From: Leidyana gryllorum EB-2025a
Taxonomy: Eukaryota > Protista > Apicomplexa
Direction of reading: 5' to 3'
NCBI GenBank assembly: GCA_048772705.1
Contig: JBLWGC010000213.1
Coordinates: 1-64,000 of the forward strand
Length of the DNA: 64,000 bases
Positions 3,770 to 56,250 of the stretch are shown here, one piece after another. Made by a program: the position numbers and the translations under genes. The first letter of the stretch is position 1, and each line of letters starts with the position of its first letter. Under the pieces are notes generated by a model. The model worked only from the letters and a program-made list of their open reading frames with translations. It made no database searches and was not told the origin of the DNA.

Positions 3770-4687
3770 CTAAGCTCCCATCATCATAGGGGGAGGCCTC
3801 TGGTTTGGGGCCGTCAATGCGCTCATACGCTCTTCCAAGAAAGCTTTTGCCACCGCCACTCGGATGTCCACTGCTTCTTGCTGAAGGCGTGCTTCGAAGT
3901 AATCCACACAGGGACCTTGCCCTCCCATAGGCATACTGGCACACACCATCGGCATCGCCGGGGCCACCATAGCAGCCTGTTGACCCATGAGAGCAGCCTG
4001 TTGAGCCTGTTGACCGACCATGACCATTCGAGGAGCGGGCGCTGTTTGCTGTACAGCTGGCACGGCGGCAGCAGCTCGCATGACGGGCATTGCAGGTGCC
4101 ATGACGGGCATTGCAGGTGCCATAACGGGCATTGCAGGTGCCATAACGGGCATTGCAGATGCCATGGCCGGCATCGCAGCTCCCATACCCATGAAGGGCA
4201 TGGCCATGGGCATACCACCCATAGCACCCATTTGGAAGCATGCCATACCTCCCATTTGATAGCCCATTCCTGCCCCGCATGGATTCATGCGAGCGTCGTC
4301 GACGCGTTTACGGGCGGCTGACTTGGCTCTCATGGCCCAAAGGTCGAAGTTTGTAATGTTTGCGCGGGCCTTGTTAATGACTTCTTGTCTCATCACCGCG
4401 TCTGCGACCTCTTTTATTTGAGCCTGCAGATTAGCTCTGTCCTGTGCCACTGCGTGGTTCATGAAGGCTTGTTGTTGGTATTGGACAAAGTGGTCTGGGG
4501 CGTATCCACCGCCACTTCTGTTGCTGCTGGAAGAGTTGCCACTTGAGGATCCAGAGGAACCAGAAGAATCCGATCCCGATGAAGATGAGGAGTGTTTAGC
4601 GGTCAAAACAGCCTCGATGAGGACCAGCGACGTCTTGGAGCCGGCCGAAGGAGAAGCTTGAACTCTGACAGTGGAGCCACGCACCAT
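3770..4687 (-). CDS. Met/Ala/Pro/Gln-rich repetitive protein
   Basis: 305-aa ORF; Ser-rich stretch, helical segment, MAPAMPV repeats; T7 tract just upstream of the ATG as in other genes here. Confidence 0.8.
   Translation of the reverse strand: MVRGSTVRVQASPSAGSKTSLVLIEAVLTAKHSSSSSGSDSSGSSGSSSGNSSSSNRSGGGYAPDHFVQYQQQAFMNHAVAQDRANLQAQIKEVADAVMRQEVINKARANITNFDLWAMRAKSAARKRVDDARMNPCGAGMGYQMGGMACFQMGAMGGMPMAMPFMGMGAAMPAMASAMPVMAPAMPVMAPAMPVMAPAMPVMRAAAAVPAVQQTAPAPRMVMVGQQAQQAALMGQQAAMVAPAMPMVCASMPMGGQGPCVDYFEARLQQEAVDIRVAVAKAFLEERMSALTAPNQRPPPMMMGA
4079..4165 (-). repeat. 21-nt coding tandem repeat x4 (MAPAMPV)
   Basis: catgacgggcattgcaggtgc repeated on the + strand with few changes. Confidence 0.9.
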
Positions 4688-5049
4688 TGGCAGAAAAAAA
4701 CCCTAAAAACCGATAGTTCCGAAAACCGCGCCTGGATGGCAGGGCGATCGGCATCGATCGGGGGGGTTGCGCACAACCCAAAGCCACTTTCAATTAACGC
4801 GAGTATAGATACATATTAGGAAGGGGCTCATTCAACGCAGTATAGTCGTCCATGATAGCGCTTTCGGTGAGGGCAGGGGGCACAGGGTAACTGTGAAAAG
4901 GACCCTCCTTTGAATCCGGCGAGCAGGCAGCCTGTGAGATCACGTAGCGTGTGTGGTGCTTCTGCAAACATCAATAGTGGCCGATTATCTTTGTCGAGAG
5001 GATAGTGTTAATTTATGGCAGTCGTACACAAATTTTCACTCGGTCGGTC

Positions 5050-7395
5050 ATGAACATCAGAATTGGGAACGAAGCAATTGAGGGGAGGAGATATGGGTGG
5101 ATAAGTCTGATGTCGATGACACTGAACAGCCTCCACGCTGTAGACGGGACTCGGCCTGCTGGAGGGCCAGCAGCGAGTCTTTCGGGCTTGATTGATTTCT
5201 ATGACTCCAAGGCGCCGGCGAAGGCTCAGCTTCTACGAGTGCGCGCGCAAGACTCCGTATATGAATTAGTGTCAAACCAGATGACTTGTCCAAGGACGCG
5301 GCTCACTCTCTGGCGAGTGGCACGACTCGCTGGGAGATCGCCTGTCACGCCAGCTCTGATGGGAAGATGGTACCAAAAGATTCTGGCGGAGCATTGGTAC
5401 GAGGACAGCGTCTTTTCGTGCTGTCTTTTGAATCCCTACACTCTACTCTTATCGAGCGGCCCCCATGTCTATGTTCACTCGTGGTTCTCGCCGTTCCGCA
5501 AGGCCATAGAGTGGACTCGAGGCCTCCCACCTGCTCAGACGGCCCGTCTCATGAAGGACCACAAAAGCAGACTGCAGTATGTTGAAAAGACAACAAACTG
5601 GGAAGCGACCCTCAAGTCACAGTGTCCCCGAGCCTTATTGATCCTCGACCGTAACTCCTTCCCGGTCAAATGCCAGCCGCTTGGCTCTGAGCCCCCGGCA
5701 GACAAATTCCGTCGGGTACTCTCAGCGAATACCACTGCCCCCCCGTGCGAGCCGGCGTTGCGCCTCCCACCTTCCAAGTGGGGGAAAACGACAACGCTAC
5801 CCTCAACTTGGTCTCGAGGAGAACCGGTCCGTGCGGAATACGAGGGAACTAAATTCGTCATGGAATGGTGTGATGATAGACTTTGGATCCACAGAGACCC
5901 CTCAGCACGCCGGTCACGGTTCGGGCAAAATGCCCATCGCCTACTTCTCCATCCAGAAGCTGCCTCGGCGCGAGTCCAACGGTTCCTCGAGCAGAACCAG
6001 TCATTTGACACTGACTACGTGACAAAGTTGGCCTCAGCCATCGCTCCAACGGCCAAACGCTCGGGCTTCATGACTTCTGGCCGTTGGTGGCCACTTCTTG
6101 CTATGAAGAATCGCGTCCATTTGGTCGTGGGACCCACTCGCTCCCTCTCCCTTCCACTCTCAAGACAACAAGCAAAAGCGGCACAACGAGGAGACGTCGA
6201 CACCCTCCGTTGGTGTATCGCACAGTCCAATTGGGAGGACGACCCAACGGGAGCGCGTCTCACTGCCGCAATCACTCTGGGACCCAACCCCGACTACGTG
6301 CTGGAGGTGATGAGTCAAATCTTCACGATGGACTCCGTCGATCGACCATCTCTCGCACACCTTCTCTTCGAGGTGTACGAACAGTGGGTGGCGATCAATG
6401 AACGCGTTGGTGATAATTGGGCTCAATCGAATCTTCGATCAACGCTCGCTGCCTCAACGTATGTCCCAGATTCTGCTCAAACCACACTCGTCTCCACAAC
6501 CGAGGAGACCATTCAAACCGAGCCGCCATCACGCCCAACTCACGTCCAACCGGCTTATCCTCCTCTCGGCCCCACTCTTCTCAAAGCTCTGCCGAGCACT
6601 CGAATTGCTTCAACTTCAACCGATGCGACTACTCGCACTGCGCTCGTGTTTCCAACTCCTCGAAACACTCCATCCGTTCTAACCCCTCAAACTGCTCCAA
6701 CTCCCCGAAGCACTCCGACTCCTTCGAGTGCGCTGAGCGCTTGGAGTCGTCCAAACATTTCAGCTGGTCGGACTGCTGCAACGAGCCCAGCTGCCGCAGC
6801 CCTTCCAACTCCTCTGATCGGTTCGACCACACCAAGTGCTTCACGCTCGTCTGTGACCAGGTCGGGTCTCGGAGAGCTGCACAGCGGACGGTCGCCAGCA
6901 CCACGCCGTCGTTATCCCTGTTCAGACGGAATGTTGCCTCCCAACTGGACCGCTTCGGACAGCGCGGTCGAGCCCACGACTGTCCAGCGTTCCACGGCTC
7001 CGCCTATCGCAAGAACTGTACAGTTTCCGCCACCGATTGGTACTACCCCACCGCCTCCCATAGAAGGGGAAAATCTAGACGCACTACCTTCCCCATTCTC
7101 TGCCTCGCTCTCGAGACAGAGAAGTGTACAGCCGTCACAGGTGGTTTCAGACTACTCAAGTCAGGCAGGGAAACAGCTAGAGGGAATGTTGAGCAGGCGG
7201 CTGAGTTCTGTGGTCCCCAGAGAGACCCCTAAACCCATTTTCCGGAGACCCGCCCGATCCAATACTTTTGCTTCGCGACAAACTCTGCCACCACGTGGCG
7301 AGACAAGGGAACCAGGACCAACTAACTCTGTTGTGTCCTCGCCCGCTCGAGATTACTACACCTTCGTGCAAAGTACGCGACGTTCATTTCGATGA
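5050..7395 (+). CDS. Hypothetical protein with globular N-half and Pro/Ser/Thr-rich disordered C-half
   Basis: Long open frame; first ATG at 5050 preceded by CAAATTTTC (5029-5037). Confidence 0.75.
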   Translation: MNIRIGNEAIEGRRYGWISLMSMTLNSLHAVDGTRPAGGPAASLSGLIDFYDSKAPAKAQLLRVRAQDSVYELVSNQMTCPRTRLTLWRVARLAGRSPVTPALMGRWYQKILAEHWYEDSVFSCCLLNPYTLLLSSGPHVYVHSWFSPFRKAIEWTRGLPPAQTARLMKDHKSRLQYVEKTTNWEATLKSQCPRALLILDRNSFPVKCQPLGSEPPADKFRRVLSANTTAPPCEPALRLPPSKWGKTTTLPSTWSRGEPVRAEYEGTKFVMEWCDDRLWIHRDPSARRSRFGQNAHRLLLHPEAASARVQRFLEQNQSFDTDYVTKLASAIAPTAKRSGFMTSGRWWPLLAMKNRVHLVVGPTRSLSLPLSRQQAKAAQRGDVDTLRWCIAQSNWEDDPTGARLTAAITLGPNPDYVLEVMSQIFTMDSVDRPSLAHLLFEVYEQWVAINERVGDNWAQSNLRSTLAASTYVPDSAQTTLVSTTEETIQTEPPSRPTHVQPAYPPLGPTLLKALPSTRIASTSTDATTRTALVFPTPRNTPSVLTPQTAPTPRSTPTPSSALSAWSRPNISAGRTAATSPAAAALPTPLIGSTTPSASRSSVTRSGLGELHSGRSPAPRRRYPCSDGMLPPNWTASDSAVEPTTVQRSTAPPIARTVQFPPPIGTTPPPPIEGENLDALPSPFSASLSRQRSVQPSQVVSDYSSQAGKQLEGMLSRRLSSVVPRETPKPIFRRPARSNTFASRQTLPPRGETREPGPTNSVVSSPARDYYTFVQSTRRSFR

Positions 7396-11088: not shown

Positions 11089-11109
11089 CTCTTTTTTTCC
11101 AATGTCGTT

Positions 11110-11454: not shown

Positions 11455-11497
11455 CAGGGACCACACACGCAAAGTTGTCGAACGCACACGCAACGCC

Positions 11498-13306
11498 TCA
11501 TTCCCAATCTGAGAGCAATTGCTTAATTTCAGCTGCGACTTGGTCAGCCACCGCCTTCGAAGTAGCTTCTATGTACGTCCTGCACACGTCCTCAGTTCCT
11601 GACGGACGAATAAAAGCTCGCACTCTTTCTGTGTCCGGGTACTTCTTGACGATGGCGTCAATTGATGCCTGCAACTCAACCGGCTCTATCAGTACCTTCT
11701 CATCGCTTGGTCGGGGTTTCAAGCGATCCAATTGGGACCGAGGCATCATCACTTTGTCTTGAACCACTTGTAGATCTTGATACAATTTCATGGTATCGCA
11801 ACTGTTCAATTTCAGTAACCTGCCAGGAGGATGGGGTAGCGGTCTCCGTTGGAGTGTCCTACCTGCACGCAGCCTCAAAAGCTAATGCATCAACCATTGC
11901 ATCACCAGTAGTATGGTTGTACATACTCAAAAAGGCGCGGAGACCCTTCCATGGGGCCAGCTGTGAAGATGGCATTTGCTCAAGATGGCTTAGTCGCTCT
12001 GACTTACATCTGTACACCCTAGGGTGGTCGCGAACTCATCCAAGCGACTTGACCGATGGATGACGGTGCCGTGCCCATTCGCCTCAAAATAAACCGCAAT
12101 GTCGAAGGCCGTGGCGGCGTGATGTAGGTGTTTGACACCGGTCTTGGTGGCCACGATCTCAATATCGTATGCTGGATTTTTGGTCTTGGTCAGTTCTTCC
12201 AAAAAGGCAGTGGAGGCTCCGTTAGCGTACGCCGTTTGCACTATCCCTACGCTCAGTGGTTTCACAGAGTCCCCCAATGCTTGAGCATATGGAGCTGTGG
12301 CCACACGCAGTAGTTGAACGATAGCAGTAGTTGCGACGACCGCAAGCCTGTCACCGTCTATAAGGACGGGAATGTTTTTGGGCTCGGTGGTCGGGGTGAG
12401 GAAATAGATGAGGCGATCGGCATCGCCATCCAGGGCACAGCAAGTCAAGCCAGGCGGGTCATTAGTTGTGGGGCCGAAGTTTTGAGGGAACTGTCGCGTT
12501 TTCTGGACATGTTCCGCCCCGCAATTTTCATTTAATACCACGACTTGGTCATCAATGCGGTTGCGCAAGCGCAAGTCGATCCCAAGGAGCTGGAAAGTGG
12601 GCTCGAAGGCGGGCATGAAGAGCGCGCCCACGCCTCCGGCACAGTCACAGACGAGCGGGCGCAACTGCTTGTTGCTCTGCGTGTTGAATTCCGCAATGAC
12701 TGCCAAATCCTTAATAAGGTCGTGGAAGTACGCAATATAAGCTTCATGCCACCAATTTGCCGTGTTGACAAGAGTAGTCTCGGCTTCGAGCTGGTTGGCT
12801 TTCCATACGCCCCAGTGCAGCATTGGCGTTGTGACCTGCTCCAAATTGATCGAACGTCCTCCTACACCTTCTACGCCTTTCTGAGCGAAGAGGGCGAATT
12901 GGGGAGATGATGGCCGTGTGTCGCGTCCGACCAGGACACGTGTTTTTCTAAGATCATCATAGGTGACTTCCAAATGCGACAAGATGTTCTCAAAAGCAGT
13001 TTGTGCATCGGGCGCCGTGGTAGCATTCGCAAATTCAGTAAGTAAAGGTTCCAAAGCTGGAGTCAGCATTCCTCCATCCGGCTCGACGACTTTGACACCA
13101 TTGTCCGAAACTTGATTGTGAGAGGCCGTAATACAAAGCCCCACAGCGGCTCCCTTGTGACTGGCAGATCTGGCTGCCGCAAACATTCCACATCGCAGCA
13201 TTACATGGGGTAAACGGCTCGCGTTGCTTCGAAATCCAGCCGTACCGTATTGCAGCTGCCCAGCATTGACAGACCAGGGAACCTCATTCAGTAGTTGGGT
13301 AATCAT
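11498..13306 (-). CDS. PGM3: Phosphoacetylglucosamine mutase
   Basis: YGTAGFR, ITASHN, DGDADR, YFEANGHGT and RAFIRPSGTEDVCR motifs; introns 11961-12007 and ~11820-11862. Confidence 0.95.
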
Positions 13307-13310
13307 TTAG

Positions 13311-13319
13311 CAAAATTTG
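13311..13319. promoter_or_regulatory. Candidate bidirectional core promoter CAAAATTTG
   Basis: Sits in the 17-nt spacer between the PGM3 and SEC62 start codons; same 9-mer at 34501 and reverse complement at 37168. Confidence 0.6.
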
Positions 13320-13323
13320 AGAT

Positions 13324-14956
13324 ATGGCAGGCGGGTGCTGTGGCGGCAATGCTCCCAGCCGTCGTCAGGACGAATGGAATCCGGCATTCGTACCGTTCTG
13401 TAAGTCCGCTCCACTCATTCCTTCCTGTCACACTCACTTCATATCCAGTCGACTACCTGACCTCCTCTGGCAAGGATGCCATCAAAACGCGTGAGGCCAT
13501 CGAAGTGGGAGCCAAGTCATGCGAATACTTCCGAGGCTCTGACTTTTACCGTTGGATAGCCCGGCATCGCGAGCTATTTGAAAAGGAAGTGAGTGCAATG
13601 TGGGCTGGAGAGAGCAGAGACTACGTCTGCCTGCTTCTGTGTGTGTGTATATATATGTGTGTGTGTGTGTGTGTAGTTGGCTTGATGGTTGAGTGAGGAC
13701 ATTGCATCTGCAGTTCTCGAGCGTTCCAGCGGCGATGGGTTTGTCCCAACTTGACGTTCCGGGCGTCCCTCAAGTGCAGCTAGCGCAAGCCATTGGCACT
13801 GCGTTGCTGGCGGCGGGCTTCATACTGAGAGTTGAGCATCGTCCGATTGCCCCAATGGATGGCGATCAGAGTACCAACGACGAGGACAACGCGACAAATA
13901 CGTTGAGAGGTGAGTCGAGTATCTGCTGCTGCTGCTGCGCATCTACTGACTCGCGTAATGCAACAGACAATCCCAAATGGCCGAGAAGGGTGGGGGTTAA
14001 TCGTGAGAATCAGTCCTTCGACAATGAAGGGTTCTATATGATCGTTTACGAGCCCGTGGGAGCCACCAACTATCTGCTTCTCGGACTCATCATAGTAGCT
14101 GTGCTGGTGAGTGGTCCGAGATGTGCGATCTCTCTGTAATAGACATCTGTGTGACTGCAGTGTGCCTGTCTCTTCCCCATATGGCCGTTCCGTCTGAAGG
14201 TCGGGGCCTGGTATCTGGGTGTGAGCGTAGGTGTTCTAATGGTAAGCAGCGATGTTGTGCCGAAAGGACGCTAATGGGGGCGGGCTGTGTGTTCAGTTGG
14301 TGATCACTATCTTACGATTGGTGGTGTTTGTTCTGTTTTGGTTCGGAGGGTGCGACTTTTGGCTCGTTCCCAAGTTCTTCGATGAAGAGGCTGGCGTGAT
14401 CGACTCTTTCATCCCTCTGTACACATTCCAAAGACGGAAAGACGATTGGCTAATGGTGGGCGCACGATGCTTTGCCGCACTGCTGAGTGTTGGTCTGTTC
14501 TACAAGTTGTCTGAGACGCATTCGTTTGCCGATATGGGCAACGTCGCTTCCAAGTGGGTGTTGCGGTGGCTTTCTCTACTCTCTACTTTTCTTTTCAGAG
14601 GTTTCTTGGATATACTGGACTGGGGACATCAGAAGCTGGCTGACTCCCCGGCTGAGACCACCGTGGCGCCTGAAGCAACAGCCGGGCTTTCGGCGGAGGA
14701 ACGGGAGAAGCTGGAGTGGGAGAGTTGTGTCAAACATTGTGAGTTTGACGATTTGGAGGAGTTTAAGGATTTCTGCTATTCGGATTGCGAGTGTATGAAT
14801 GAGCTATGGGGTTCCAATTGTTGGAAACGTTGTCCTGTTGAAATTCAAGACAAACTTCGCTTGAAGAGCTCTGAATGTGCGGGCACCGACGTGGGAGAAG
14901 GAGATGAAGAGGAGGAAGTTGGCGGTCTGGATGGGGCAGAGCGAGACGAACTCTGA
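13324..14956 (+). CDS. SEC62: Translocon subunit Sec62 (6 exons) with C-terminal Cys-rich extension ending RDEL
   Basis: Spliced product has EYFRGSDFYRW, CLFPIWP..KVGAWYL and FWLVPKFFDEEAGVIDSFIPLY; five GT-AG introns. Confidence 0.9.
13638..13673 (+). repeat. Intronic (TG)n/(TA)n microsatellite
   Basis: tgtgtgtgtgtatatatatgtgtgtgtgtgtgtgtg in SEC62 intron 2. Confidence 0.9.
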
Positions 14957-17198: not shown

Positions 17199-17342
17199 TT
17201 TTGAGGTGGGCTGGGCTGTAAAAAAAGGTGGGAGACCGCGAGACAGCGCACACAGGAGCGGTTGGAAAGGATGAGTGAGGAATTACACACTCTCTGTTCC
17301 TCTCCCCCCGACCTCTCTTTACCTTCTGACTGAGTTGGCTTG

Positions 17343-26688: not shown

Positions 26689-28562
26689 TCACAGATACAG
26701 GCCTTCAGGAATCTTTCCCTTCTTCCGATAAAGGGCCTTATCCTTAGCTTTTCGGAAATCTGCGTGACATGGCGGTGATGAAAGTACTCAATCCAGTCTT
26801 TCTGCGACTCACCATCCTGTGTGACACGCATTCGCCTCTCTCTGAGCGCCAACAGGCCCGCTTCGGTACACATGGCCTGCAACAAACAGTTTCGATACCA
26901 CTCATCAAGCGATCAAGTCTGGAAAGTACCTTAATATCGGCACCCGAGAGATCGTCTTTAGTCATGATGAACTCCTCGAGGTCCACATCGTCGCCCAGGG
27001 TCATCTTGGATGTATGTATATTGAAAATTCGACGCTTAGTCTTGGAGTCCGGAGCTGGAAGCTCAATCTTCCGATCAATACGCCCAGGACGAATCAGAGC
27101 GGGATCTAAAGCCTCGATCCTGTTGGTGGCCATAACTACCTTCACGTCACCCTTGGCATCGAAACCGTCCAATTGATTCAGAAGCTCAAGCATTGTGCGC
27201 TGGATTTCGCGCTCGCCGCCGCTATGTGCCTCGTACCTGCCATGACACCCCAAACGTAAACCTCAGCAGTCATTGATAACCACCACTCACCGTTTGGACC
27301 CAACGGCGTCAATTTCATCAATGAAGACGATGGAGGGAGCATGTTCCTCGGCCACTCTAAAGAGCTCGCGGACCAGTTTGGGACCGTCGCCCAGATATTT
27401 CTGTATGAGCTCCGAGCCAACAACGCGCAAGAAGGTAGCAGAGGTCTCGTTCGCAACCGCTTTCGCGAGCAGTGTCTTCCCGGTCCCGGGGGGGCCATAC
27501 AGAATGACACCCTTCGGCGGCTTGATGCCAATGTCCTCGTACAATTCAGGATGAACCAGAGGCAGCTCGACTGCTTCTTTGATCTCTTGAATTTGAGTCT
27601 CCAAACCACCAATGTCGCGGTAACTCTCCAACGGAGCTTTGTCCACCTTCATGACCGACACCAGCGGATCCACGTCATTTTGCAGAACTCCAACCACTGC
27701 CATCACCTGTAACCGAGAAACGACAACGATAAACCCAGAAATCCTTCGTAGAAGAAGCTCACCTTGTTGTGCAGCAGCACGTTAGCGTCCGGCACCAACT
27801 GATCTTTGTCCACAATTGACAAAATGTTGACATAGTGGTCTGGACCAACGGCGGATGACACGATGGCGTGATTTTCGTCTATGATCTCGGCCAAAGTGCC
27901 CACGGTCAACGGCGAATCCCGCAAGTCATTTATAATCGCGCGCTCTCTCTGCAGCAGCAAGAATATACCCAATCTTCTTTCGGAGCGGAGACATGAACAT
28001 CAATCGCTATGACAACCGCTAAAGTTCATCGACACCCCACACCACCACCTTATTGTGCATAGGCACAGACACAGGTCTTTTTTGGTCTAAAGACCCTTCG
28101 CAGCAGATGAACAACACACACAGTCGCACACTCACACATTCAGATGGACACAAGTATCGGCACATACTCGCACTCGCACACGCGTAGACAGACACACACG
28201 CACGCACACTGATTCAACGTTCAATGCATTGTTAGACACAGTGTATGTGTATGGCGTACCTCAGCCCTCTCCTCAGGCGGGCGATGCTTCTCCTTGTTAA
28301 GGATGTATTCCTGTTCAAGTAAAAGGAAGTCTTTGACTTTCTCTTGACGCAGTTGGCGTAGTCTACAGCGAGAGGCAGGGGTGATAGCAGGAAGTTTGGA
28401 GGCGCCAACGGTGCCTTTGGTGCGTCGTTGTTTACGCCCTAGGCCGGAAGTGATAGTCTGCTTTTGTGTTTCGAGTCTTCTGGACTTCTCGCGGTCTTGA
28501 CGTTGCTTGTCCTGGTCATCCCCCTGATTGGGTGGGAGGTTTAGCCCGTGCGCGTTGCCCAT
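26689..28562 (-). CDS. RPT2: 26S proteasome AAA-ATPase Rpt2 (subunit 4)
   Basis: MG start, [31 protein letters not shown]-terminal IPEGLYL; five introns. Confidence 0.95.
27972..28125 (-). ncRNA. Candidate intronic H/ACA-like snoRNA in RPT2 intron 1
   Basis: Hairpin (GGTCTTT/AAAGACC core), ACAATA (ANANNA), hairpin (GGGGTG/CGCTCC, ATGAAC/GTTCAT), AAAGAAGA; intron is ~310 nt against the usual 40-60. Confidence 0.35.
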
Positions 28563-28596
28563 ACTTTTTTGTTTTTGTATTAAGGTCAATGGTCTT

Positions 28597-30180
28597 ATGG
28601 CAGAACCGGGCGCGTTAGACGCAGAAGAGTGGTTCGCTTTCTTGGAGGGTCGTTCTCAATGGCACTTTAATTGTCGCGAAAATCGTACTAACCGACTTCT
28701 ACGGGCGCGTACTGTGGTTTTCGGTCTCGAAGATGGGTCGTTATCTTCCTCACTGGAGGTTGGCGAGCCACGCGGTGCGATACAGCAGGGAGCAGATGAC
28801 TCTTCCGACTCCATGGATCCGTATCGACAGTGCCGGCGTCTGGTGGAGCGGGGGAGTGAGTGGTTGTCGACTAGCAGTCGGATGCCGGCGACAGACTTGT
28901 CGAACACCCCATCTGCGAGTGTTCCCCGGCGGCGGTTCCGGCGGAGTACAGCGGTTGTTCCCCGACCGGCCAACCGTCCGGTGGACCTGTTACTCCAATA
29001 TCCATTGGTGCCTGAACTTCTCGCCTCCAGGAGAGAATTTGAGCAAATGTTAAGCCGATCGGAGCGATTATGCCAACAGGGTAAACCTTTCCTTCCGGCC
29101 TCTACGCCGTTACCCAACTTCCGCGAGGATTTGTACGTTGCGTTTCATGCAAGTGTACACTCGATGAAAGGTCTGCAAGAGAATCAAGACTTTTGTTGGC
29201 GCCCGAAGGGGCATAAGTGCCATTTAATGCATCTACTCTTACTTCCGACTTTTGGGTCGCACCTTCTGGTTCTCTCCTCTCCACTATCGAGGATGACTGT
29301 CCAGCAGCTTCTCAAGGTGCACAAACTATCCCACATACGCCTCGGGTCGCCGCCCGGGCTGGATATGACGGAGCTCTTCCGAGTCGCTGCGGCCGGCGGT
29401 ACCCCGCTGCCGAGCGAGCTGCGTCGGAGACGGCGGACTACGCGTCGGAGTAAGCGTCAGAGTCTGCGACACGCGCTTAGCTGTATGTGTGGACGTCGTA
29501 CGGGGAGTGTGCGCGCGGGGAGTTGTGTGGGAGTATCTGACATGCGAGTGGAGGAGAATCCGACGTCGTCGTCTGCGACAGTTCGTACTCCTCCCGCTGA
29601 TGAAGGACCAATGAGACGTCATAATAGTAAACGTCTGGTGGGATTGAGTGAGGCTGAGGAAACAACTCGTGCCGAGTCACCTGATTCCCAGTTGTTCTCT
29701 GATTCAGACGACAATAGCGATCAACAAAACAATGTATTTGGCGAAGGTTTGCGTAATCCGATAACGCGTTCGACTTCAAGTCTGTTGGGCCCACAAAGGC
29801 CGTCTATTCGAACCTTCCTTAATATCGAAAGAGCTCCGAAAATCACACTGATTGACTCGAAAACGCTCTCGGTGCTCAGTCGGCTTAATGAAACACCACA
29901 ACGTGATCTACATTTGTTGCCCAATACTGCTAACGGTTCTGGGGTTCTGCTGCATGGCTCACTCGCTGTCGCCTACAACCACGCCCGAGTCCTATCACTG
30001 TTCATGGACGAACTCCCAGCACCTTTGGTATTCCTCACTTCGTCCCCGGCACAAACGTCCCGAGTGCTGCAAGGACTCGCTCTGTCGTACTACTTCCTGG
30101 ATCGAAACTATCTCCCCCTCGAGGTCTCAGAACCGCTCCTGGATAGTTTTGGCGCTGGACGCCGTCGCAGCAGCATCTAA
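28597..30180 (+). CDS. Hypothetical protein, 527 aa
   Basis: Long open frame with Arg-rich patches; no family recognised. Confidence 0.75.
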   Translation: MAEPGALDAEEWFAFLEGRSQWHFNCRENRTNRLLRARTVVFGLEDGSLSSSLEVGEPRGAIQQGADDSSDSMDPYRQCRRLVERGSEWLSTSSRMPATDLSNTPSASVPRRRFRRSTAVVPRPANRPVDLLLQYPLVPELLASRREFEQMLSRSERLCQQGKPFLPASTPLPNFREDLYVAFHASVHSMKGLQENQDFCWRPKGHKCHLMHLLLLPTFGSHLLVLSSPLSRMTVQQLLKVHKLSHIRLGSPPGLDMTELFRVAAAGGTPLPSELRRRRRTTRRSKRQSLRHALSCMCGRRTGSVRAGSCVGVSDMRVEENPTSSSATVRTPPADEGPMRRHNSKRLVGLSEAEETTRAESPDSQLFSDSDDNSDQQNNVFGEGLRNPITRSTSSLLGPQRPSIRTFLNIERAPKITLIDSKTLSVLSRLNETPQRDLHLLPNTANGSGVLLHGSLAVAYNHARVLSLFMDELPAPLVFLTSSPAQTSRVLQGLALSYYFLDRNYLPLEVSEPLLDSFGAGRRRSSI

Positions 30181-32830
30181 GTTGATGACGAACACGAAGC
30201 ACCACCACTTAGTAATCCCCTCCTCTCTGTCCATTTACGCCTCTCTTCCTCTTCCCACTCGTTCCTGGGGGGTGCCTCACAGTAACTGATGCACCAGCCT
30301 CCACAGTATCCCTTGATCATAGCCCGTGAGGTTCGCTCCACGTCTGGCACACCTCCTTTTCCTCTCACCAGATACCCCCTCTTCTCGGCGATTACCTCTA
30401 TCGCTTCGCGAGGTTTGGTGGCCAATCCCCGCACATCCAACATGCGTTCCAGTGCCGCAAACTGACCAGCGACACCATAAACCTCCTCAATTTGGTATTG
30501 AATCCTTTCCAACAAACATCCGACTGGCCCCACCAACGTTCCCCGATACGTATCAACCGACATTACATTGCCAATCACCAACTCTTCCTTGCGATGAGCT
30601 GTAGTCGGGAACACCAAACCTAAAACATTGAAACGCCATAATAAACAGCTCCTCCAATACAAAAACGTTCGTTACCTGGACAATCACAGAGAGTAAAAAT
30701 CGAGTTGGGCACTTCCAGAGTCTGCAGATGCCGAGTCTTGCCGGGTGTACGACTGATCCCAACACGCTTTGTCCCCCTCAGCAACGAATTAATGATACTG
30801 GATTTACCCACGTTCGGGAAACCTGTTGTTCCAATCACTGGACGCAGCAGACATCGCCGACCACCGCTCGCGCTTCCAGGAACAACGTCTGCCCCCTCCT
30901 CAACTATCGCTTCTTCCAACTCGAGTGATTTGCTCGGGCCCAGAAGACTGCTCAAAAGATCTCGGCGCACTTTCGCAACCATTTCTTTGCTCAGCTCAAT
31001 CGGTCTGATGGCACCATTAACACCCGTCGACGACAAATTCTCTCCCTCCCCATCAGACTCTTCTCCTTCGTTATCGGTGGCCTTTGCCTCGGCCTCGGCC
31101 TCGATTTTGGCCTCAGATGCTTCTCCAGCCTCCTCTTCCTCACTCTCCTCCTCGTCAAACTGCTCGGTGGCACCTTCTTGGGCCGGATCCCAGGGATCGA
31201 TCACATTGAGAGCGTTGCGACGGAGAGCCACGTAGATCTCGAGTCGTTCTTGTTGGGGAAGAGTCTCGGTGAGTTTGGCGAGATGGGTATAGAGAAGCTG
31301 AGCCAATTTGTACCGCCTTTGTTTTTTCTCCAGAATCACTGAGCCTCTCTCGTCGAGATAGTGCACGAGTTCATCCAGATCGAAAAAGTCAGCCGTCTTC
31401 TCCATTGCAGCAACAGAGATAAACTTCTTACCGCCGTGGCCTTCGGCCATGTCGCCAGGCGAGGGCTGGTGGGGAGCGGCGGCCTTGGCTTCACTGCTCG
31501 AACTTGTGACATCCTCACTGGTGGTGTGGGACGACTTGTTGTCGTCGTCATCCCCATTTCTGGGCATTTTTTGAGGAGAGGTCTCGACGGCTCCACTTTG
31601 GACACTCGTTGGACCTTCGCTGCTCTCCTCACTCTCACTGTCCTCTTCGACGAGAGCGGCAAAGTTTGCGTTCCGTGGACGCTCGAGGATCTCCTCTTCT
31701 TCGTTTGCTTTGGACTCTCCGCTGTCGTTCTCGTCGCCCTCCGCTTTGCAGTCGTCGTCCTCCTCCTCGTCGGACTGGGAGGAGAGATTGTTGAGGAGAC
31801 GGCGAGAGAGTCGGTTGGCCGAGTCGTTTTGTTGGATTTCCAGCTCTCTGGCGGCAGAGTAGAAAATGACGTCGAGCTTCTGGGCTTCAAAGTAGTCTTT
31901 CCATATCTTCCTCTGCATCGGGGAGAGGAAATCCGTCTTATTCATCAACAGGAGGACCTCGCGGTTCATCTCGGTGACCAAATCCTCGAGAGGTTTGCAG
32001 CGGAAAAGGAGTGGGTTTCTGGCGTCCACAACCTCAATGACGAGATCGGATCGCTCAATGGTTCGCCACAATTGTTTCCAATAGGCGAGATTCTTCTCAT
32101 AGGGAGCGATAACGCGGCTGTCCTCGGCGTTAGCAATATGCTTTCTCCAGCGGGAGAAGGCCGCGGACTCCTCCTTGTCGAGCTCGTCAGCTGTCAAGAA
32201 GGGAGCAAAGTTTTCACGTCTTTCAAAGTAGGTGGTGATGGCCATTTTGAGGATAGAGACGTCATTGCATTTGAGAGCGTAGGACAGAGCGACGTCCTTT
32301 GTTATCTTCTTATCGGCCTCGCCGGTCTCGGCAACGAAGGCCTGTTTGCCAAAGGCAGCGGCGAAATCGATGACTCGGTTCGCAGGGTCGCGGAAGAGGA
32401 ATGGACGTCGCGGCAACGGCAAATCAGCCAATACATTGGTCGGTTTGAAGAGGGAAGAATTATTGATAGTGCCAAAGAGAGACGAAGCGGTCCCTTTGTG
32501 CTGTACAACCGTGGGGGTCTCGATAGAAATGAAGCCCTGACCCCGAGTTTTGACGACCAAATTGCGCGACTCGGCGTAACTATTCTGTTGCGCTAAGGTC
32601 TGAGCAAAGTAGTCATCGAGGTCCTGCGCCTCGAGACAGGATGATTTAGCCTTGTCCGCCGATACAAAGTCCATAACTTGAATTTGCTTGGTGGGGCCAT
32701 CTCCAACAGCTCGTAGACGGTCTGGGTCGGGTCGTTGGAAGTCGAAGCAGCCCACTGCCTTATTCTTGCCCAAAGACAGACCGAATCCGCCGCCCTTCTG
32801 GGCTCCACCGCTCTTACGGCCACGCGGCAT
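30177..32830 (-). CDS. LSG1: Large subunit GTPase 1 (circularly permuted GTPase)
   Basis: PYEKNLAYWKQLWRTIERSDLVIEVVDARNPL, NKTD, GFPNVGKSS, DCPG|LVFP across intron 30620-30675. Confidence 0.93.
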
Positions 32831-32862
32831 TGCCAAAAAAAGCTATAGATTTGTCAGCTATC

Positions 32863-33400
32863 ATGCCCGCCCTTCAACTGTATTTGACAGCTGAATTCGA
32901 TGAAAATATAGAAAGCATCGAAGTGCCTCCAGAATTCACATACTGCTTCGACGTACAACAGTCTGCTGGATCTGTAAGCCCTATTCACTCGTTGTGCTGA
33001 CCACCCATACAAACACCTCCTTGGCCTTTTTGGCTAACGACAGGAAGTCCGCCAACAAGTGACTCTGAACCGACTGTCAGAAGAAGATGTCCCAAATTCG
33101 CGCGGGAAGTGTCATCTGGTTGTGTCCTTTGATAAGAGGCCGTCCACCATTACTATTGTAAACAATTCAAAGAAGGCGAATCCTATTCTGAAAGAGTCAA
33201 ACAAATGTCAGTCGGTTGCTGAATTCGACTGCCGCGGGATGGAGCCTATCAAGTTTCACGTCGGTAAAGGGTTCCGCGTCAGAAGCACAAGCGGAACCGT
33301 TTGGGAAGATGTGGACCTCAGCGACAGCTGGGCCGAGTATTGTGAGAAAGGAGAGTGTTGCGTGTGTGTGGGCAAAGTAGACTGGAAAATTGCGCCATAA
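32863..33400 (+). CDS. DUF866 / UPF0587 (C1orf123-like) protein
   Basis: SRGKCHLV, AEFDCRGMEPIKF, SGTVWEDVDL..WAEYCEK; one intron ~32974-33044. Confidence 0.85.
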
Positions 33401-33408
33401 TCATCACA

Positions 33409-34491
33409 TCAAAGCTGCGTGAGAGCGAAGCCCCGGGCAACTGAAGACCGCAAAGAATCTAATACCTCATGCAGTTGAGTCTCCAAGTACCGGGGGGAGT
33501 ATAGCCCCGACTTTAGCAGTCGACCAACTTCTGGAAGGCGTAAAGCTCTGGTTAACATTCTCCAGCCTCGGCGAATGTGGCCAGAGGACGCCCCCCCACC
33601 ATCTTCTTCATCGCTGGAGGCATCTCCACCATCAATATCCACAATCGTTTCTTTGATCCTCCGAGCGGCTCTCCGCATCTTGACCGACGCCGACTCGACC
33701 AGCTGTCGACTGGCGCACCTTACCACAGCGAAGTGTCGAGATACAGTGGGGTCGTGTCTGTAGCACCCCCGGGGCGACAGCGAAGTGGTGAATATGAACT
33801 CACAGGCCGATAGTGCAACAGGTGGCAATCTTCCGATCAACTCTAAGACATCTTTCATATGGGCGTCTGTGAGAACCTCGAATCGATCATAGATGCCAAA
33901 GGCTTCGGCAAACATATTGTCCATTTTAGACTCGTTCCCGATGGCAGTGCTCGCCCTTAAAACACGTTTCGGTCCGCGGCCGTCTTCGGCAGCCGCGTCC
34001 TCAGTGGTTGTAATTGGCCGACCCGGCGCTGATCTCGGGAGTGACGAGTGGATCACTCTTCGACGAACGCGGCAGAGATTGGAGTTGGGAGTGGAATCAC
34101 TGCTGGCGGTCGAACATGTTGAGCTGCGCGGCGAAGCATCTGTGAAGTGGGAAGGTGGCTGCAATGAGGGTGCTGGTAGATTCTCTTCTGCCAGCGCGGG
34201 TATTAGTACAGTAACATCAGCCAATGGATGGTAGGATTCCTCCTCGTCCGGGAGATCGTACTCAGTGCAATACCAATACGTCTCAACCTTTCTGAGCACG
34301 AATTGAACAAAATGCTCAATCAGAGGAGGATTGCTGTCATCTGCTCCTTCTGTCGCCCATTTCACACCGAACTGGAGAATGGGGTACCATTCATCTGTTT
34401 CGGCGCGGCATTGGTGACACCGTAGTGCGGGTGCCCGGGATACAACCTTCACTCGGGCATATGGACTCTCTGTACCCTCTGAGAACGTCAT
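33409..34491 (-). CDS. Hypothetical protein, 360 aa
   Basis: Long open frame; ATG 34491 lies next to the CAAAATTTG motif. Confidence 0.7.
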   Translation of the reverse strand: MTFSEGTESPYARVKVVSRAPALRCHQCRAETDEWYPILQFGVKWATEGADDSNPPLIEHFVQFVLRKVETYWYCTEYDLPDEEESYHPLADVTVLIPALAEENLPAPSLQPPSHFTDASPRSSTCSTASSDSTPNSNLCRVRRRVIHSSLPRSAPGRPITTTEDAAAEDGRGPKRVLRASTAIGNESKMDNMFAEAFGIYDRFEVLTDAHMKDVLELIGRLPPVALSACEFIFTTSLSPRGCYRHDPTVSRHFAVVRCASRQLVESASVKMRRAARRIKETIVDIDGGDASSDEEDGGGASSGHIRRGWRMLTRALRLPEVGRLLKSGLYSPRYLETQLHEVLDSLRSSVARGFALTQL

Positions 34492-34500
34492 AACATCGTT

Positions 34501-34509
34501 CAAAATTTG
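34501..34509. promoter_or_regulatory. Candidate bidirectional core promoter CAAAATTTG
   Basis: In the 20-nt spacer between divergent ATGs at 34491 and 34512. Confidence 0.6.
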
Positions 34510-34511
34510 CG

Positions 34512-37087
34512 ATGGACTACCGAACCGATACCTGTGACTATGTTCAGAAAGTAGCTTCAGTCTCAGTGCGGTCACTTGGTGCCCTAACGAGTCTACTCCA
34601 ACTGCTGAGTCAGGATGCTACTACCCGTGCTACAGAATATGCGACGCAAATTGAGACTGCATACAACGAACTCATATCAGAGCTGGGACTGGACACCCAC
34701 GATCCCGACTACGTTCGAATAGCCTATATCCTATCCCAACGCTCGTCGTCCCTCCATGCCGCCGGGGCTCCCTCCTCCCCCGTAGATCATTGCCAACGTC
34801 TCGTATCAGACTACTTCCGACTGCCTTCACTGAGAGCACTGGCCGAGGAAGCCTGGCTAATCAACCTGGAGTATGAGCAGCAGGTCGAAGAGGAGGAAAT
34901 AGAGGACGCTATGGGGTCCGATGGTCGGAGCAGAAAAAGAAATCGCGCTGCCTTTGACGCTGTCACCCCCACCGCTCCCCTGGCTGGTGCCAGTTTCAGG
35001 TAAGAAGAATCATGAGCGCCGATCTCCTATTCACCGGCACCAAACGTAGTCAACTGGTCCCCAATGAGAATATTAATGTTATCAACGCGCCGCCTGTCAG
35101 TCCGGCGCCCAAACCGTCCGACCAACAGGGCAGCGATGAGGTCGCATATCAGTTCAGGATGACCCCTCGTCTTGCCTCCGCAATGGCAACCTTCGAGCGG
35201 GAATTCAATGGTGATTTTCATTCAGCTGCGGAACAGCAGCCCTCTCCGCCTGCCAATGGCGATATGCCCAATGTCTCTTTGAATCGCCTCACCTTTGGAG
35301 GCGATGACGCCACCCCGCTTCTGCCCGCCCGACCAGATCAACAGCATCTCACCGAAGAGGAGGAGGAGGAGGAGGAGGAGGAGGTCACTGCCGAAGATCA
35401 CCTCCTCCTCGACTCAGATCCCGACGACCGCGCCCAACGACAGCTCCCCAACACCGTCGGCAGATCCGATCAACCAGCTTTGGCCACAATCTATGACGAT
35501 GAAGAAGACCTCCAGAGCGCAGACGACGGTGAGTCCGAACACGAAGAAGAAGAAGAAGGATTCGAGTCCTCTGCTGAGGACCTCGACGACCAGGAAGAAG
35601 ACGAAGAGGGCGAAGACTCGCGTCTGGGAGTCCTGCCGGAACACGGCGAAGAAGAAGAAGAGGGCAGCAGCAGCGACGACGACGAGGAACCCCTCGAAAC
35701 CGTCCTGAATGCTGGAGGAGTGTCCGATGAGAGCAGTGACAGTGAGGAGGAAGACGAGTCTTCCGGGGAACTGGAAGCCTCAGATTCCGAATATCAATGC
35801 GAGTCTCGGAGCCAATCGTTCCGAGATGAGGATTACACAGAGTCGGAAGGAATGGGCAGTCCGAGTGGCGACAAACAGTTAGGCACTATGATGCAGGAAC
35901 CCAAAATGAAAGCTCGGGACGCCTACGAGACCACCACTCGCTCGGAGACGGCACCCGAGCCGATGGCGTACACTGACGATCCGAGCCACTTTAACGAGAC
36001 ACCGGTCCGAACGGCGGCTAACCCTCCGGTCCATACGCCCGGACCCCCCGTACACTCCAGTTTCTTCGCCTCCTCGCTGGCGACTGCAGCTGCGTTGGTC
36101 AACAAGGCTCGAGTGGTGCCGGCTGCTACTCCTCGCCTGCCACAGCCTCCGTCAGCCAGTCGGATTCCGACAGGGCCTCAGGAAGGTGCCGAGCCGATCG
36201 CCCCGATCAGAGTGGTGACTCCTTTGGCTAAGCTGCAAGAAGCGCTGCGATTCGGACACTCAAAGCCAGCGGCGCCGCCAGTGCCTCGGCCGCCGCAGAC
36301 AGCTTCCTCTGGAATCCCATCAGGGGCGCCGTCTCCGATAAAGAAGAAGTCGCCTGCACCTGTCACTTTGCAGCAGCTGCCTTCCCCCCCAATGATACGC
36401 ACACCCGCAGCATACAATAAGGAAAACGTCCATCCCTCAAACGTGCGGTGTTATCACCGGTCCTTGCGACCGTTGCCTCCGCCCAACAGGGCAGACTCGC
36501 TGGATATGTCTGATGCCCATGTGTATCGATCGAAGAACGGACAGCCGACTCCGCTGTGGGCTCGGGGGTCCGACTGGAGAGAACAAGTCATCAAACAGAA
36601 GGACTGGAATCCCCATTCCGTGTTCGGATATGGTGTTCGACACATTCAGTACAGAGGTGAGGCGGCGGTTGCAACAAGGGTGTGGTCACTTGGGTGACTT
36701 TGAGTGACTCTGGGTGACTCTGGGTGACTCTGGGTGACTTTGGTGACTTTCCTCCTCCGAGCAGATGTGTTTCAAACGCCCGATATACGTCGGGCTCAAG
36801 GTGAAGACGGTCTGAGGGATGCTGGCAACGGACTCACTATCCGGGCGCGGAACTGGGAAGCAGATAGGAAGGCTTGCGGTTTCTTGGAGCACGAAGCGTA
36901 AGTGAGAGTGTTGGTAGGCTATCTGGTTCGCGTTTGGTGTTGCAGGATGACGGAGGAGCAACTGCGATTTATGGTGAGTCAACTGAGTAAGAAGAAGGAC
37001 ATTTCGGACCGCGTGTATACCTCCAAATGGGAATTGTGCACTCCCGAGTGCCGTCACGACTGCAGTCGGAATCAGGTGAGCTTTTAA
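34512..37087 (+). CDS. INCENP: INCENP-like protein (C-terminal IN-box / Aurora-binding motif)
   Basis: PLWARGSDWREQVIKQKDWNPHSVFG fits the IN-box P.WA..Q..P..IF pattern; acidic and Pro-rich middle; introns 35000-35050, ~36657-36764, ~36899-36946. Confidence 0.65.
36691..36750 (+). repeat. Intronic minisatellite, 10-nt unit TGGGTGACTY, ~6 copies
   Basis: tgggtgactt tgagtgactc tgggtgactc tgggtgactc tgggtgactt tggtgacttt. Confidence 0.9.
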
Positions 37088-37191
37088 TGGGAACGGAGGC
37101 TACCGATACTGTGCTGTCAGCCTTGGTTGAAAGTGGAAAGGATAGAACCCTCATAGTATAGATAGCTCAAATTTTGAGGGCCCGCCTCGTC

Positions 37192-38871
37192 ATGACGGAC
37201 AAAGAAACCCAGCAGAAGGTGCTCCTCAATTATCTGGCATCTGCATTCGACGGTGGGGCGGACAAAGTCAGCACAACTGATGTTGCTCGTGAGTTGTCAT
37301 GGCCACACGACCAAGTGGTTGGCATCATGAAGTCATTGGAAATGATGTTCAAGATACACACTGAACAGGCCGTAACTGTATCGTGGAAACTGTTACCCGC
37401 CGGAGAGGAAACTGTCGCCAGCGGTTCTCCAGAATGGAGGCTTCTGAGTGAGATAAAGTCTCGAGGCGAGGAGGGTCTTCCCCTCAGTGAGCTCAAAGCT
37501 GCGACGGAGGAATGGCGAAAAGCGGGTCAAAACGTTTGTTTGAAGAATCGGTGGGCCACCAGCGCCAATGGGAAGCTCTGCGCTGCCGATTCGCTCCCAA
37601 GCGAAGACTTGGTGCAGTCGCAAATGCGACAAATCAAGGAACTCGGAGGAGATGAGACAAAGTTGGCAGAGCTCCACAACATTACGGCAGCGGACCTCGC
37701 AGCACTCAGCAAGAGAAAGATGCTTCAGAAAGTCTCAAACACATTCTTCTATATGAAGAAATCTGACACATTCAGCACTGACATTGTCAAACTCAACACT
37801 GATCTTAACCAACAGTTGCTCCAGACTGGCAACTGGAAGACTGCAAGTGAGTCATAAGCCATCGTCACACTTTCTTCTCAACCCACTCCCCCAACAGAGT
37901 TCAAACCTTATAATTGGAACGCCGCTGGAGTTGTTCCCAGAAACGGGTCCACTCATCCACTCATCAACACTCTCAACATGTTCCGAAACATTCTCGTCGA
38001 AATGGGTTTCTCGGAAATGCCAACGAGAGTGAGTCCTTCTTCGTTCAATAAACAAAGCGTCAATCTCCTTCCGTTATGCAGCGTTGGGTGGAGTCGTGTT
38101 TCTGGAACTTTGACGCACTCTTCCAGCCTCAAACGCACCCCGTTCGAGACGCCCATGACACCTTCTTCCTCAAGGTGAGTTGCTCGCTGGCTCGCTAATC
38201 TGCCCCCCCCACAGAAACCCACGTGCCACGAGGCACCCACAGATAACAGCGGGAAGCTCCCCCGTGACTATTTCGATCGCGTCAAGAATATCCATGAAGT
38301 CGGAGATGGGGAGTCCTTGGGGTGGCAGTGCGAGTGGAAAGAAGAGGAAGCGTGCAAACTCATCATGAGGACTCACACCACTGCCATCAGCTCCCAAATG
38401 TTGAGAGAACTGGGACGCGTCTATGAGGAGACCGGAGTCTTCACTCCCAAGAAATTCTTCTCTATTGACAGAGTCTTCCGTAATGAGACTCTCGATGCAA
38501 CCCATCTGGCTGAGTTCCATCAAGTTGAGGGAGTAATCGCTGATCGGGGGGCGTCATTGGCCTCCTTGATGGGCTTCATCGCCGCATTCTACGAGAAAAT
38601 AGGAATCACCCAACTCAAGTTCAAGCCTGCCTACAACCCCTACACGGAACCCAGCATGGAAATCTTTGGCTACCATCCTCTACTGAAGAAATGGACAGAA
38701 ATCGGAAATTCTGGTGTCTTCCGTCCAGAAATGTTGCGTCCAATGGGATTACCAGCAGACGTTAATGTCCTGGGATGGGGACTCAGTCTCGAACGGCCAA
38801 CTATGATCAGCCAGGGTGTACGTGACATTAGAGAATTGTTCGGGCCTAAAGCCAAACTAAACGTTTTCTGA
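37192..38871 (+). CDS. FARSA: Cytosolic phenylalanyl-tRNA synthetase alpha subunit
   Basis: [59 protein letters not shown]; three introns. Confidence 0.95.
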
Positions 38872-43109: not shown

Positions 43110-43131
43110 TACTCCTGCAAAAAAAGAAGGG

Positions 43132-46997: not shown

Positions 46998-47247
46998 CGC
47001 TCTCTCCTCCCATCGAATCCCACGGCGACCGTCTTTGTTACATCGAGTATTTCAGACCCCACGATTTGACTGGAAAGATGAAGGCCGCCATGGACTACCA
47101 GTTCAATATAGGGGTCTAAGTCATCTCGGAAGGCGTTTGGGCATAAGCTCAAGCCGCGAATGGACCGAAGAAGTGCAGCACGACACTACCGATGATGCAC
47201 AAGAAACTACTGGAAGTGGAGAGTAGTCAAGATTTTTTTGAGGGAAG

Positions 47248-48933: not shown

Positions 48934-48955
48934 AAAGACTTTTTTAGAGTGAACC

Positions 48956-53032: not shown

Positions 53033-53061
53033 CGGATTCAGATACAATTTTTTGGGAACTG

Positions 53062-53373
53062 ATGGGGCTCACTGAGCTGGAAAGGCAAGTTCGCAAGCAG
53101 AACCGGAAACCAAGGAGGGATGTTGTCAAGGAGTGGGTTCAGAAGAACCACGCAGCCAAATTTGCGGGGAAGAAGGCAGCTGAGCAACCTGTTGGTGAGC
53201 TCAAGGCAGTCACCGTCCCTATAAAGAAGAAGGCTGCTCGCCTGGAGACCCTCGATCCCCTGTCTGAGACGGCGGCGAAAGTAGCCCTTTTCAGACAGCG
53301 GTTGAAAGAGAAGAGAGAGAAGAGAAAGCAGAAGCTCGATACTGAGCAATCCAATACTGGGAAACCCAACTAA
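53062..53373 (+). CDS. Small basic hypothetical protein, 103 aa
   Basis: Lys/Arg-rich ORF that exactly fills the gap between HSP60 and the TKL; T6 tract upstream. Confidence 0.7.
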
Positions 53374-56193: not shown

Positions 56194-56250
56194 GCCAGAC
56201 CGAAAAATGGGTAAGTTGTGGTCCAAAAGACCTTTCAAAAAAGCACCACA

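Follow-up and report, generated by a model that had tools for sequence, protein, structure and literature searches.

Short dA:dT tracts beside start codons and between closely diverging genes of the eugregarine Leidyana gryllorum: a candidate minimal two-way promoter

Poly(dA:dT) runs are known as promoter elements that exclude nucleosomes, in Plasmodium too. In the microsporidian Encephalitozoon cuniculi, an AAATTT-like signal stands before the ATG and the 5' untranslated regions (UTRs) are shorter than 7 nt; the ribosomal-protein genes S16 and L13 form a head-to-head pair in this species, with a 35-bp spacer whose palindromic signal has been proposed to serve both (Peyretaillade et al., PMC2803860). 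Transcripts of Giardia lamblia start inside an AT-rich patch close to the ATG, and its promoters fire both ways (PMC1885649). In Cryptosporidium parvum, accessible chromatin has been found to contain a poly-T motif, and over half of the regulatory peaks were labelled bidirectional (bioRxiv 10.1101/2025.01.17.633476). For gregarines, a literature search found no paper on promoters or transcript starts, and the Porospora genome paper holds nothing on them. Here we describe a short A-tract (a dA:dT run of the form An, Tn or AnTn) from the eugregarine Leidyana gryllorum EB-2025a (Apicomplexa), in a window of 64,000 nt that includes seven very closely spaced head-to-head gene pairs. That this tract marks the 5' ends of genes in either orientation, and is common to diverging genes, is well supported.

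The window, by which the whole stretch is meant, covers the initial 64 kb of contig JBLWGC010000213.1 (466 kb), which belongs to an assembly of 15.5 Mb in 237 contigs (GCA_048772705.1). The genome is intron-rich, of 53% GC and very compact, and the window itself has many short GT-AG introns and nearly no intergenic DNA. Its long HSP60 exon is closest to transcriptome-derived proteins of terrestrial eugregarines (Gregarina spp., Blabericola and Protomagalhaensia, 62-64% identity), with the coccidia next at 56%; TBP and TFIIB domains were detected in the genome. Statistics are based on the window together with the 200 kb that follow it on the contig (264 kb in all), alongside pattern counts over the whole genome. 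As candidate starts, 97 first ATGs of open reading frames (ORFs) chosen by codon bias in the 264 kb were used, a noisy collection in which some internal exons are present. A strict tract was defined as A6+, T6+ or A3+T3+, and the zone scored was -35..-1 before the ATG.

A strict tract was found in this zone at 29 of the 97 candidate starts and at 251 of 20000 random positions (1.3%; odds ratio 33.6, p 6.5e-31), and the enrichment over background that was implied by a preliminary description of this DNA is therefore real. First ATGs of shadow ORFs deep in coding DNA were preceded by a strict tract in 3 of 227 cases (1.3%; p 5e-14 against the candidate starts), and over the two controls the odds ratio is about 32-34. 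When A6+ and T6+ runs only were counted, the candidate starts scored 21 of 97, against 1.0% of random positions and none of 683 internal in-frame ATGs, whilst AAATTT was present at eight of the 97 starts and at 0.5% of random positions. Tract centres are concentrated next to the start codon, with 31 at -20..-1 and 12 at -40..-21, the other 20-nt bins from -200 to +200 holding 0-4 each; the gap between tract and ATG is 3-31 nt, with a median of 9. Altogether, 105 strict tracts were found in the 264 kb (0.4 per kb), of which 42-50 are at evident 5' ends, 16 fall deep in ORFs and 39 are placed otherwise, many of these last in front of short first exons like that of XRN2. The total of A/T runs of six or more of any kind is not raised (884 observed, 962 in a first-order Markov simulation), and hence it is the placement of the tracts and not their number that is unusual. 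The position of the tract near gene starts is not due to chance. The share of starts that carry it, 30-38%, is a rough lower bound, since the ORF-derived start set contains false starts.

The same tract is found between closely diverging genes. All seven of the head-to-head spacers named in the preliminary description (17, 20, 22, 29, 32, 34 and 57 nt, measured from CAT to ATG) were recovered, and each holds, as was said there, either CAAAATTTG or six or seven consecutive A or T. The surrounding DNA is indeed GC-balanced, at 49-56% GC across the window in 2-kb steps, and the bases that adjoin the tracts are of ordinary GC content. Together the seven spacers (211 nt) would be expected to hold approximately 0.08 strict tracts and contain at least seven, which gives a density of about 33 per kb against at most 0.4 per kb in the remaining non-ORF DNA, introns included. 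Spacers of 13-37 nt have one tract, whereas the longer ones (56193/56251 and 4687/5050) have one by each ATG. Genes in tandem arrays are also preceded by a tract, for example those at 47233 and 48940.

As to its anatomy, the element is an A-tract and not the 9-mer CAAAATTTG, which had been put forward as a shared core word: the genome contains 91 copies of the latter against about 86 expected from a composition-based estimate, so that it is not over-represented, and all four of its sites in the 264 kb precede an ATG. Read on the sense strand, the tracts near starts comprise 17 T-runs, 11 A-runs and 9 AnTn, with no strand preference (p 0.34); this either-orientation result concerns the occurrence of the tract. 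Among the flanking bases, G is no more than mildly favoured (55-60% against approximately 44%), and no E2F-like TTTSSCGC continuation of the tract was seen. AAATTT occurs eight times upstream of starts and TTTAAA not at all, an excess that is not significant because the genome itself favours AAATTT by about 3:1 (28 to 9). Neither a CCC nor a GGG rule was found between tract and ATG (CCC in 8 of 37 cases with 4.1 expected, GGG in 2 of 37 with 3.8 expected), a second AT-rich element, scored as a W5+ run 15-45 nt upstream of the tract, was not enriched (11 of 37, against 21% at random), and TATA was absent from the same interval in all 37. The tract itself was considered as a canonical TATA box and rejected: it is An, Tn or AnTn, and at the verified ATGs of RPT2, LSG1 and PGM3 it lies 2-5 nt away, so that a start site 25-30 nt downstream would land inside the coding sequence. 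Upstream of the tract, 39 ATG triplets were counted in 2220 nt against approximately 32 expected; this lack of depletion favours, weakly, start sites at or near the tract, and transcripts probably do not begin far upstream of it.

Since the spacing stands or falls with the correctness of the start codons, these were tested one by one. Nine of the flanking starts are supported by N-terminal homology or exon logic, whilst four others on which the spacings depend (34491, 34512, 28597 and 56193) were taken as the first ATG of the ORF. Residue 18 of PGM3 pairs with residue 22 of Candida AGM1 in an alignment, residue 4 of RPT2 pairs with residue 5 of full-length Rpt2 (8amz_I), and HSP60 has a presequence of about 23 amino acids, after which it aligns from residue 2 of the mature human protein. 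The first exon of XRN2 consists of 13 codons, MGVPTFYRWLCTK, followed by a GTAAGT donor, and positions 39 onward of the XRN_N profile fall in the second exon. The N-terminus of LSG1 found no match among solved structures, and its start was settled instead with a relative, to which it aligns residue 1 to residue 1 (47% identity, E 1e-23); its partner at 32863 matches PF05907 from profile position 2, and PheRS-alpha at 37192 matches DBD1 from profile position 9. Exon 1 of SEC62 (13324-13399) is in frame with the exon of the Sec62 domain, which on manual reading has no in-frame ATG ahead of the domain. The HSP60 partner at 53062 has weak similarity to the syntenic gene of a relative. Candidate starts are those of the METTL14-like gene at 43132, where the MT-A70 position is known, and of the putative eIF2A gene at 43109, named from its N-terminal sequence. 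Exact-protein look-ups for RNA evidence with three single-exon genes of the window returned no matching contig. The junctions and the other tract sites are collected in the table, together with two repeated sequences from elsewhere in the genome.

Table. Head-to-head junctions and further tract sites in the window (window coordinates), and repeated sequences on other contigs of the assembly (contig handle: coordinates)
Feature	Interval	Strand and start codon	Spacer	Tract and distance to ATG	Remark
PGM3/AGM1 and SEC62	13304..13326	minus, ATG 13306; plus, ATG 13324	17 nt	CAAAATTTG at 13311-13319; common tract AAAATTT 13312-13318, 5 nt off either ATG	
Two unnamed genes	34489..34514	starts 34491 and 34512	20 nt	CAAAATTTG at 34501; AAAATTT 34502-34508, 10 nt and 3 nt from the ATGs	starts are first ATGs of ORFs
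eIF2A-like and MT-A70/METTL14-like	43107..43134	minus, 43109; plus, 43132	22 nt	A7 43119-43125	
HSP60 and small basic protein	53030..53064	minus, 53032; plus, 53062	29 nt	T6 53048-53053, 15 nt from HSP60 ATG	
LSG1 and CXXC zinc-binding protein (PF05907)	32828..32865	minus, 32830; plus, 32863	32 nt	A7 32835-32841, 4 nt off LSG1 ATG	
RPT2 and unnamed 527-aa ORF	28560..28599	minus, 28562; plus, 28597	34 nt	T6 28565-28570; T5 28572-28576	
MORN-repeat-like gene and XRN2	56191..56253	minus, 56193; plus, 56251	57 nt	A5 56203-56207; A6 56237-56242; one per ATG	MORN-repeat-like gene named TKL in the preliminary description
Candidate 61-codon ORF and PheRS-alpha	37152..37194	minus, 37154; plus, ATG 37192		AAATTTT 37169-37175, 16 nt 5' of PheRS-alpha ATG	additional to the seven junctions of the preliminary description
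Long head-to-head spacer	4687..5052	minus, ATG 4687; plus, ATG 5050	362 nt	A7 4694-4700, 6 nt from ATG 4687; AAATTTT 5030-5036, 13 nt from ATG 5050	tract beside either ATG
COPI_assoc gene	11089..11098	minus, ATG 11088		T7 11092-11098, 3 nt before ATG	single-gene tract
POP1-like gene	17199..17226	minus, ATG 17198		A7 17220-17226, 21 nt before ATG	
Class-V aminotransferase gene	47233..47250	plus, ATG 47248		T7 47233-47239, 8 nt before ATG	tandem junction
Tract before ATG 48956	48940..48958	plus, ATG 48956		T6 48940-48945, 10 nt upstream	
Tract before ATG 61997	61977..61999	plus, ATG 61997		AAATTT 61977-61982, 14 nt upstream	
Tandem repeat with CATGTGGCAAAAAAGTGTTAAACATG	C23:6139-6970, C26:1408-2215, C26:19065-20382, C25:33601-36846, C37, C38, C41, C43, C55, C66				possibly a satellite
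40-nt stretch with two AAAATTT cores	C6:17666-17706, C25:45592-45631, C43:194616-194655, C96:5845-5884, C107:85-125				near-identical copies

Two syntenic head-to-head pairs were found to keep the tract in distant eugregarines, one of them with the strand flipped. In Logan contig L022 (SRR5171258), HSP60 stands head-to-head with a weakly similar small gene across a 36-nt spacer; the tract reads A3T7 and stands 14 nt away from the HSP60 ATG, compared with A6T2 and 15 nt in the window, and the remaining spacer differs. Contig L026 (SRR31860986) retains the PF05907/LSG1 pair with a spacer of 13 nt that is all A/T (A8, T3, A2), and the sense-strand run before LSG1 is A8 there against T7 in the window, which constitutes the flip; a second, unrelated pair on L026 has a 15-nt spacer with AAATTTT. 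For PGM3, an A8 run lies 19 nt upstream in L023 and T5 plus A6 lie within a 63-nt head-to-head spacer in L025, whilst no tract was found in L024, where SEC62 is not head-to-head. The order PGM3, small gene, COPI_assoc (10141-13306 of the window) is kept in L023, L024 and L025, and SEC62 is head-to-head with PGM3 only in the window and in L025; an arthropod contig, L027, was left out of the comparison. The duplex tract and its proximity to the ATG are thus kept across proteins that are only 40-62% identical, whilst neither the remaining spacer nor the strand on which the tract lies is conserved, which speaks for action at the level of DNA and not of RNA. In EukProt transcriptomes of related gregarines (Blabericola and Gregarina sp.), contigs either barely exceed the coding sequence (1738 nt for the 568 amino acids of HSP60) or contain several genes, and on one contig of 10.9 kb HSP60 is the third ORF; these contig sizes hint at very short UTRs or overlapping transcripts.

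Pattern counts over the whole genome, which are independent of annotation, extend the picture beyond the contig. The arrangement CAT-N2-16-AAAWTTT-N2-16-ATG has 118 matches, compared with 35 for its ATG...CAT mirror, among 783 AAAWTTT sites, and an A6 core lies between diverging ATGs 620 times as opposed to 292 in the mirror arrangement. A tandem repeat with CATG on both flanks, located on small contigs, swells the A6-core and the mirror counts equally. The excess of about 80 plus about 330 sites suggests that the genome has a few hundred ultra-short head-to-head pairs with a common strict tract.

The tract is very probably functional at 5' ends and is most likely a minimal two-way promoter; promoter function, the position of the start sites and short leaders are what we infer from sequence. 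The best explanation, which we hold to be moderately probable, is that a dA:dT run of 6-10 bp functions, whichever way round it stands, as a minimal core-promoter or initiator element and is common to closely diverging genes. Such a run, present before many start codons, would act on the DNA: being probably stiff, easily melted and nucleosome-excluding, it would be the place at which a conventional complex of TBP, TFIIB and RNA polymerase II (Pol II) opens the duplex. Where the ATGs are 13-37 nt apart a single tract would serve both genes, and across longer spacers each ATG would have its own. As TBP and TFIIB are present, a conventional complex would have to cover the first codons of both genes; two complexes would then not occupy the junction jointly, and the two directions would probably alternate. 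Transcripts would most likely begin in the tract or at its edge, giving leaders of approximately 3-30 nt, and at the shortest spacers the opposed 5' ends would overlap by the length of the tract. The proposal that one orientation-independent element drives both genes has accordingly held for the sharing of the tract, its lack of strand preference and its proximity to starts, whilst the driving of transcription is its conjectural part; the statement that two pre-initiation complexes cannot fit in such spacers is an argument and not a finding, as complexes can sit over coding DNA. A bolder form, which is offered tentatively and which we regard as possible but somewhat short of probable, is that a lone tract of 6-10 bp would be a complete two-way Pol II promoter, with back-to-back or slightly overlapping mRNAs, leaders of about 3-25 nt, routine near-leaderless translation of capped mRNAs, an origin independent of Microsporidia and Giardia, and conservation across the eugregarines.

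Several observations weigh against the promoter explanation. About 60% of the candidate starts are without a strict tract, so the tract cannot be the sole type of promoter. One of five examinable tail-to-tail spacers carries an A6 run, in a control that offers five usable pairs on an ORF-level map and in which two pairs have a loose tract; the run in question (205881-205886 of the joined contig, L016:1881-1886) lies in a 44-nt spacer and means that tracts are not strictly limited to 5' junctions. The upstream-ATG test is low-powered, and selection is restricted in what it can remove, since the DNA upstream is in many cases coding. Lastly, leaders of 3-10 nt would demand unusual recognition of the start codon. 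Two ATGs within the junctions themselves would be bypassed by transcripts that begin at the tract or beyond it: one at 56207-56209, just after the A5 run and on the XRN2 side of the spacer, and one in a two-codon mini-ORF (ATG-TTA-TGA, 34492-34499) that overlaps the minus-strand start at 34491.

The main rival, which is quite possible although we consider it on the unlikely side, places the start sites further upstream within the coding sequence of the partner gene, such that the mRNAs overlap by tens of bases and the tract is a nucleosome-excluding sequence or a passenger of the leader instead of an initiator. The presence of conventional TBP and TFIIB fits this well, given that 17-34 nt is far less than an ordinary initiation complex covers, as do the multi-gene transcriptome contigs of related gregarines and the extensive overlap of neighbouring UTRs reported for the related C. 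parvum (bioRxiv 10.1101/2025.01.17.633476). It sits less easily with the undepleted ATGs beyond the tract, with a tract that is tied to the ATG and not to the middle of the spacer, and with the longer spacers, in which every ATG has its own tract nearby. The tight coupling to the start codon could also be explained if the tract acted in the RNA, as an unstructured A/U-rich stretch that aids ribosome loading or internal starts on overlapping or polycistronic transcripts, and polycistronic transcripts have been reported in C. parvum (bioRxiv 10.1101/2025.01.17.633476). A-runs and U-runs would then need to be equally effective, the tract before LSG1 has changed strand between species, and a head-to-head pair would still require transcription to initiate at or near the junction; we consider a role in RNA improbable.

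Two further readings are hard to reconcile with the controls. If the tracts had no function, the sole non-coding DNA might have drifted to A/T runs, or mis-called starts might mimic the closeness, and five or six flanking starts are indeed without homology support (34491, 34512, 28597, 56193 and partly 43109/43132). Against this stand the nine verified starts, the usual GC content of the bases beside the tracts, the difference in tract density between the spacers and other non-ORF DNA, and the tracts kept in the syntenic spacers of distant relatives; the random-position and shadow-ORF controls largely refute this reading, which we hold to be very improbable. The least credible of all, in our judgement, is that a T-run followed by AG is the acceptor for spliced-leader trans-splicing on long primary transcripts. 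Some spacers do resemble a 3' splice site (the sense strand of the eIF2A-like gene has T7 and then GCAG), but of 28 homopolymer cases 11 have an A-run on the sense strand, and a pyrimidine tract would be visible to only one gene of each pair. A search for the dinoflagellate/perkinsid spliced leader, the one leader type searched for, gave no match at up to three mismatches, and to our knowledge spliced-leader trans-splicing is not known in Apicomplexa.

Some other sequences were encountered during the analysis. The tandem repeat that bears CATGTGGCAAAAAAGTGTTAAACATG has a period of roughly 140-180 bp, with this sequence in each unit, and is present in many copies on many small contigs. A near-identical stretch of 40 nt with two AAAATTT cores between CAT and ATG recurs on at least five contigs, and may be the head-to-head junction of a multi-copy gene pair or of a mobile element. 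Three tandem paralogues at L003:878, 5009 and 8919 (74878, 79009 and 82919 of the contig), with first ORFs of 1241-1457 codons, have in common an upstream region of about 60 nt that ends in T5-7 and then GG, 6-7 nt before the ATGAAACC start. Within the window, a (GT)n/(TA)n microsatellite occupies 13637-13675, inside the second intron of SEC62.

These results would provide the first sequence-level description of how gene starts are marked in a eugregarine. With the tract as a guide, true start codons and short first exons can be predicted, as in XRN2, SEC62 and the PF05907 gene, which is of help with these genomes, intron-rich as they are and difficult to annotate. The junctions offer a natural test of the smallest two-way Pol II promoter in a genome that retains TBP and TFIIB. 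Should transcription prove to begin at the tract, apicomplexan biology would come to include near-leaderless translation.

The parallels with Microsporidia and Giardia that were drawn in the preliminary description are sound (PMC2803860, PMC1885649). The gregarine and the Microsporidia have in common an extremely compact genome and an AnTn or A-rich run no more than about 20 nt upstream of the ATG. The microsporidian signal, however, is accompanied by a CCC (or GGG) triplet ahead of the ATG and is associated with ribosomal-protein and highly expressed genes, whereas the gregarine has no CCC rule and its pure A- or T-runs are commoner than AnTn; very short leaders have been measured in Microsporidia, whilst those of the gregarine are predicted, and the gregarine genome differs in being intron-rich, apicomplexan and of 53% GC. 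The likeness to Giardia lies in an AT-rich patch close to the ATG, loosely defined and at 3-25 nt in that organism. Giardia has in addition a second AT-rich, TATA-like element approximately 30 bp upstream and a divergent TBP, in contrast to the gregarine, where TBP and TFIIB domains are detected and a second element shows no enrichment; moreover, the upstream transcripts of Giardia are mostly sterile antisense RNAs, whereas the gregarine junctions have genes in both directions. With the poly(dA:dT) elements of budding yeast and the poly-T motif of C. parvum, the tract has in common that it is a homopolymeric run of dA:dT, found preferentially at promoters and in either orientation. The yeast and C. 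parvum tracts are located in intergenic regions of hundreds of base pairs, well upstream of long leaders, unlike the gregarine tract, which is a few bases from the ATG in an intergenic region that may be 13-34 nt in its entirety. The convergence suggested in the preliminary description is tempered by the poly-T motif in the open, often bidirectional promoter chromatin of the related C. parvum, given which the tract of the gregarine may have come about by compression of a more ancient apicomplexan practice and not by convergence pure and simple. To the case for convergent minimal promoters among parasites with reduced genomes, a third example would be added, one of balanced GC; the gregarine adds a further lineage to an already known class of minimal AT-rich promoter.

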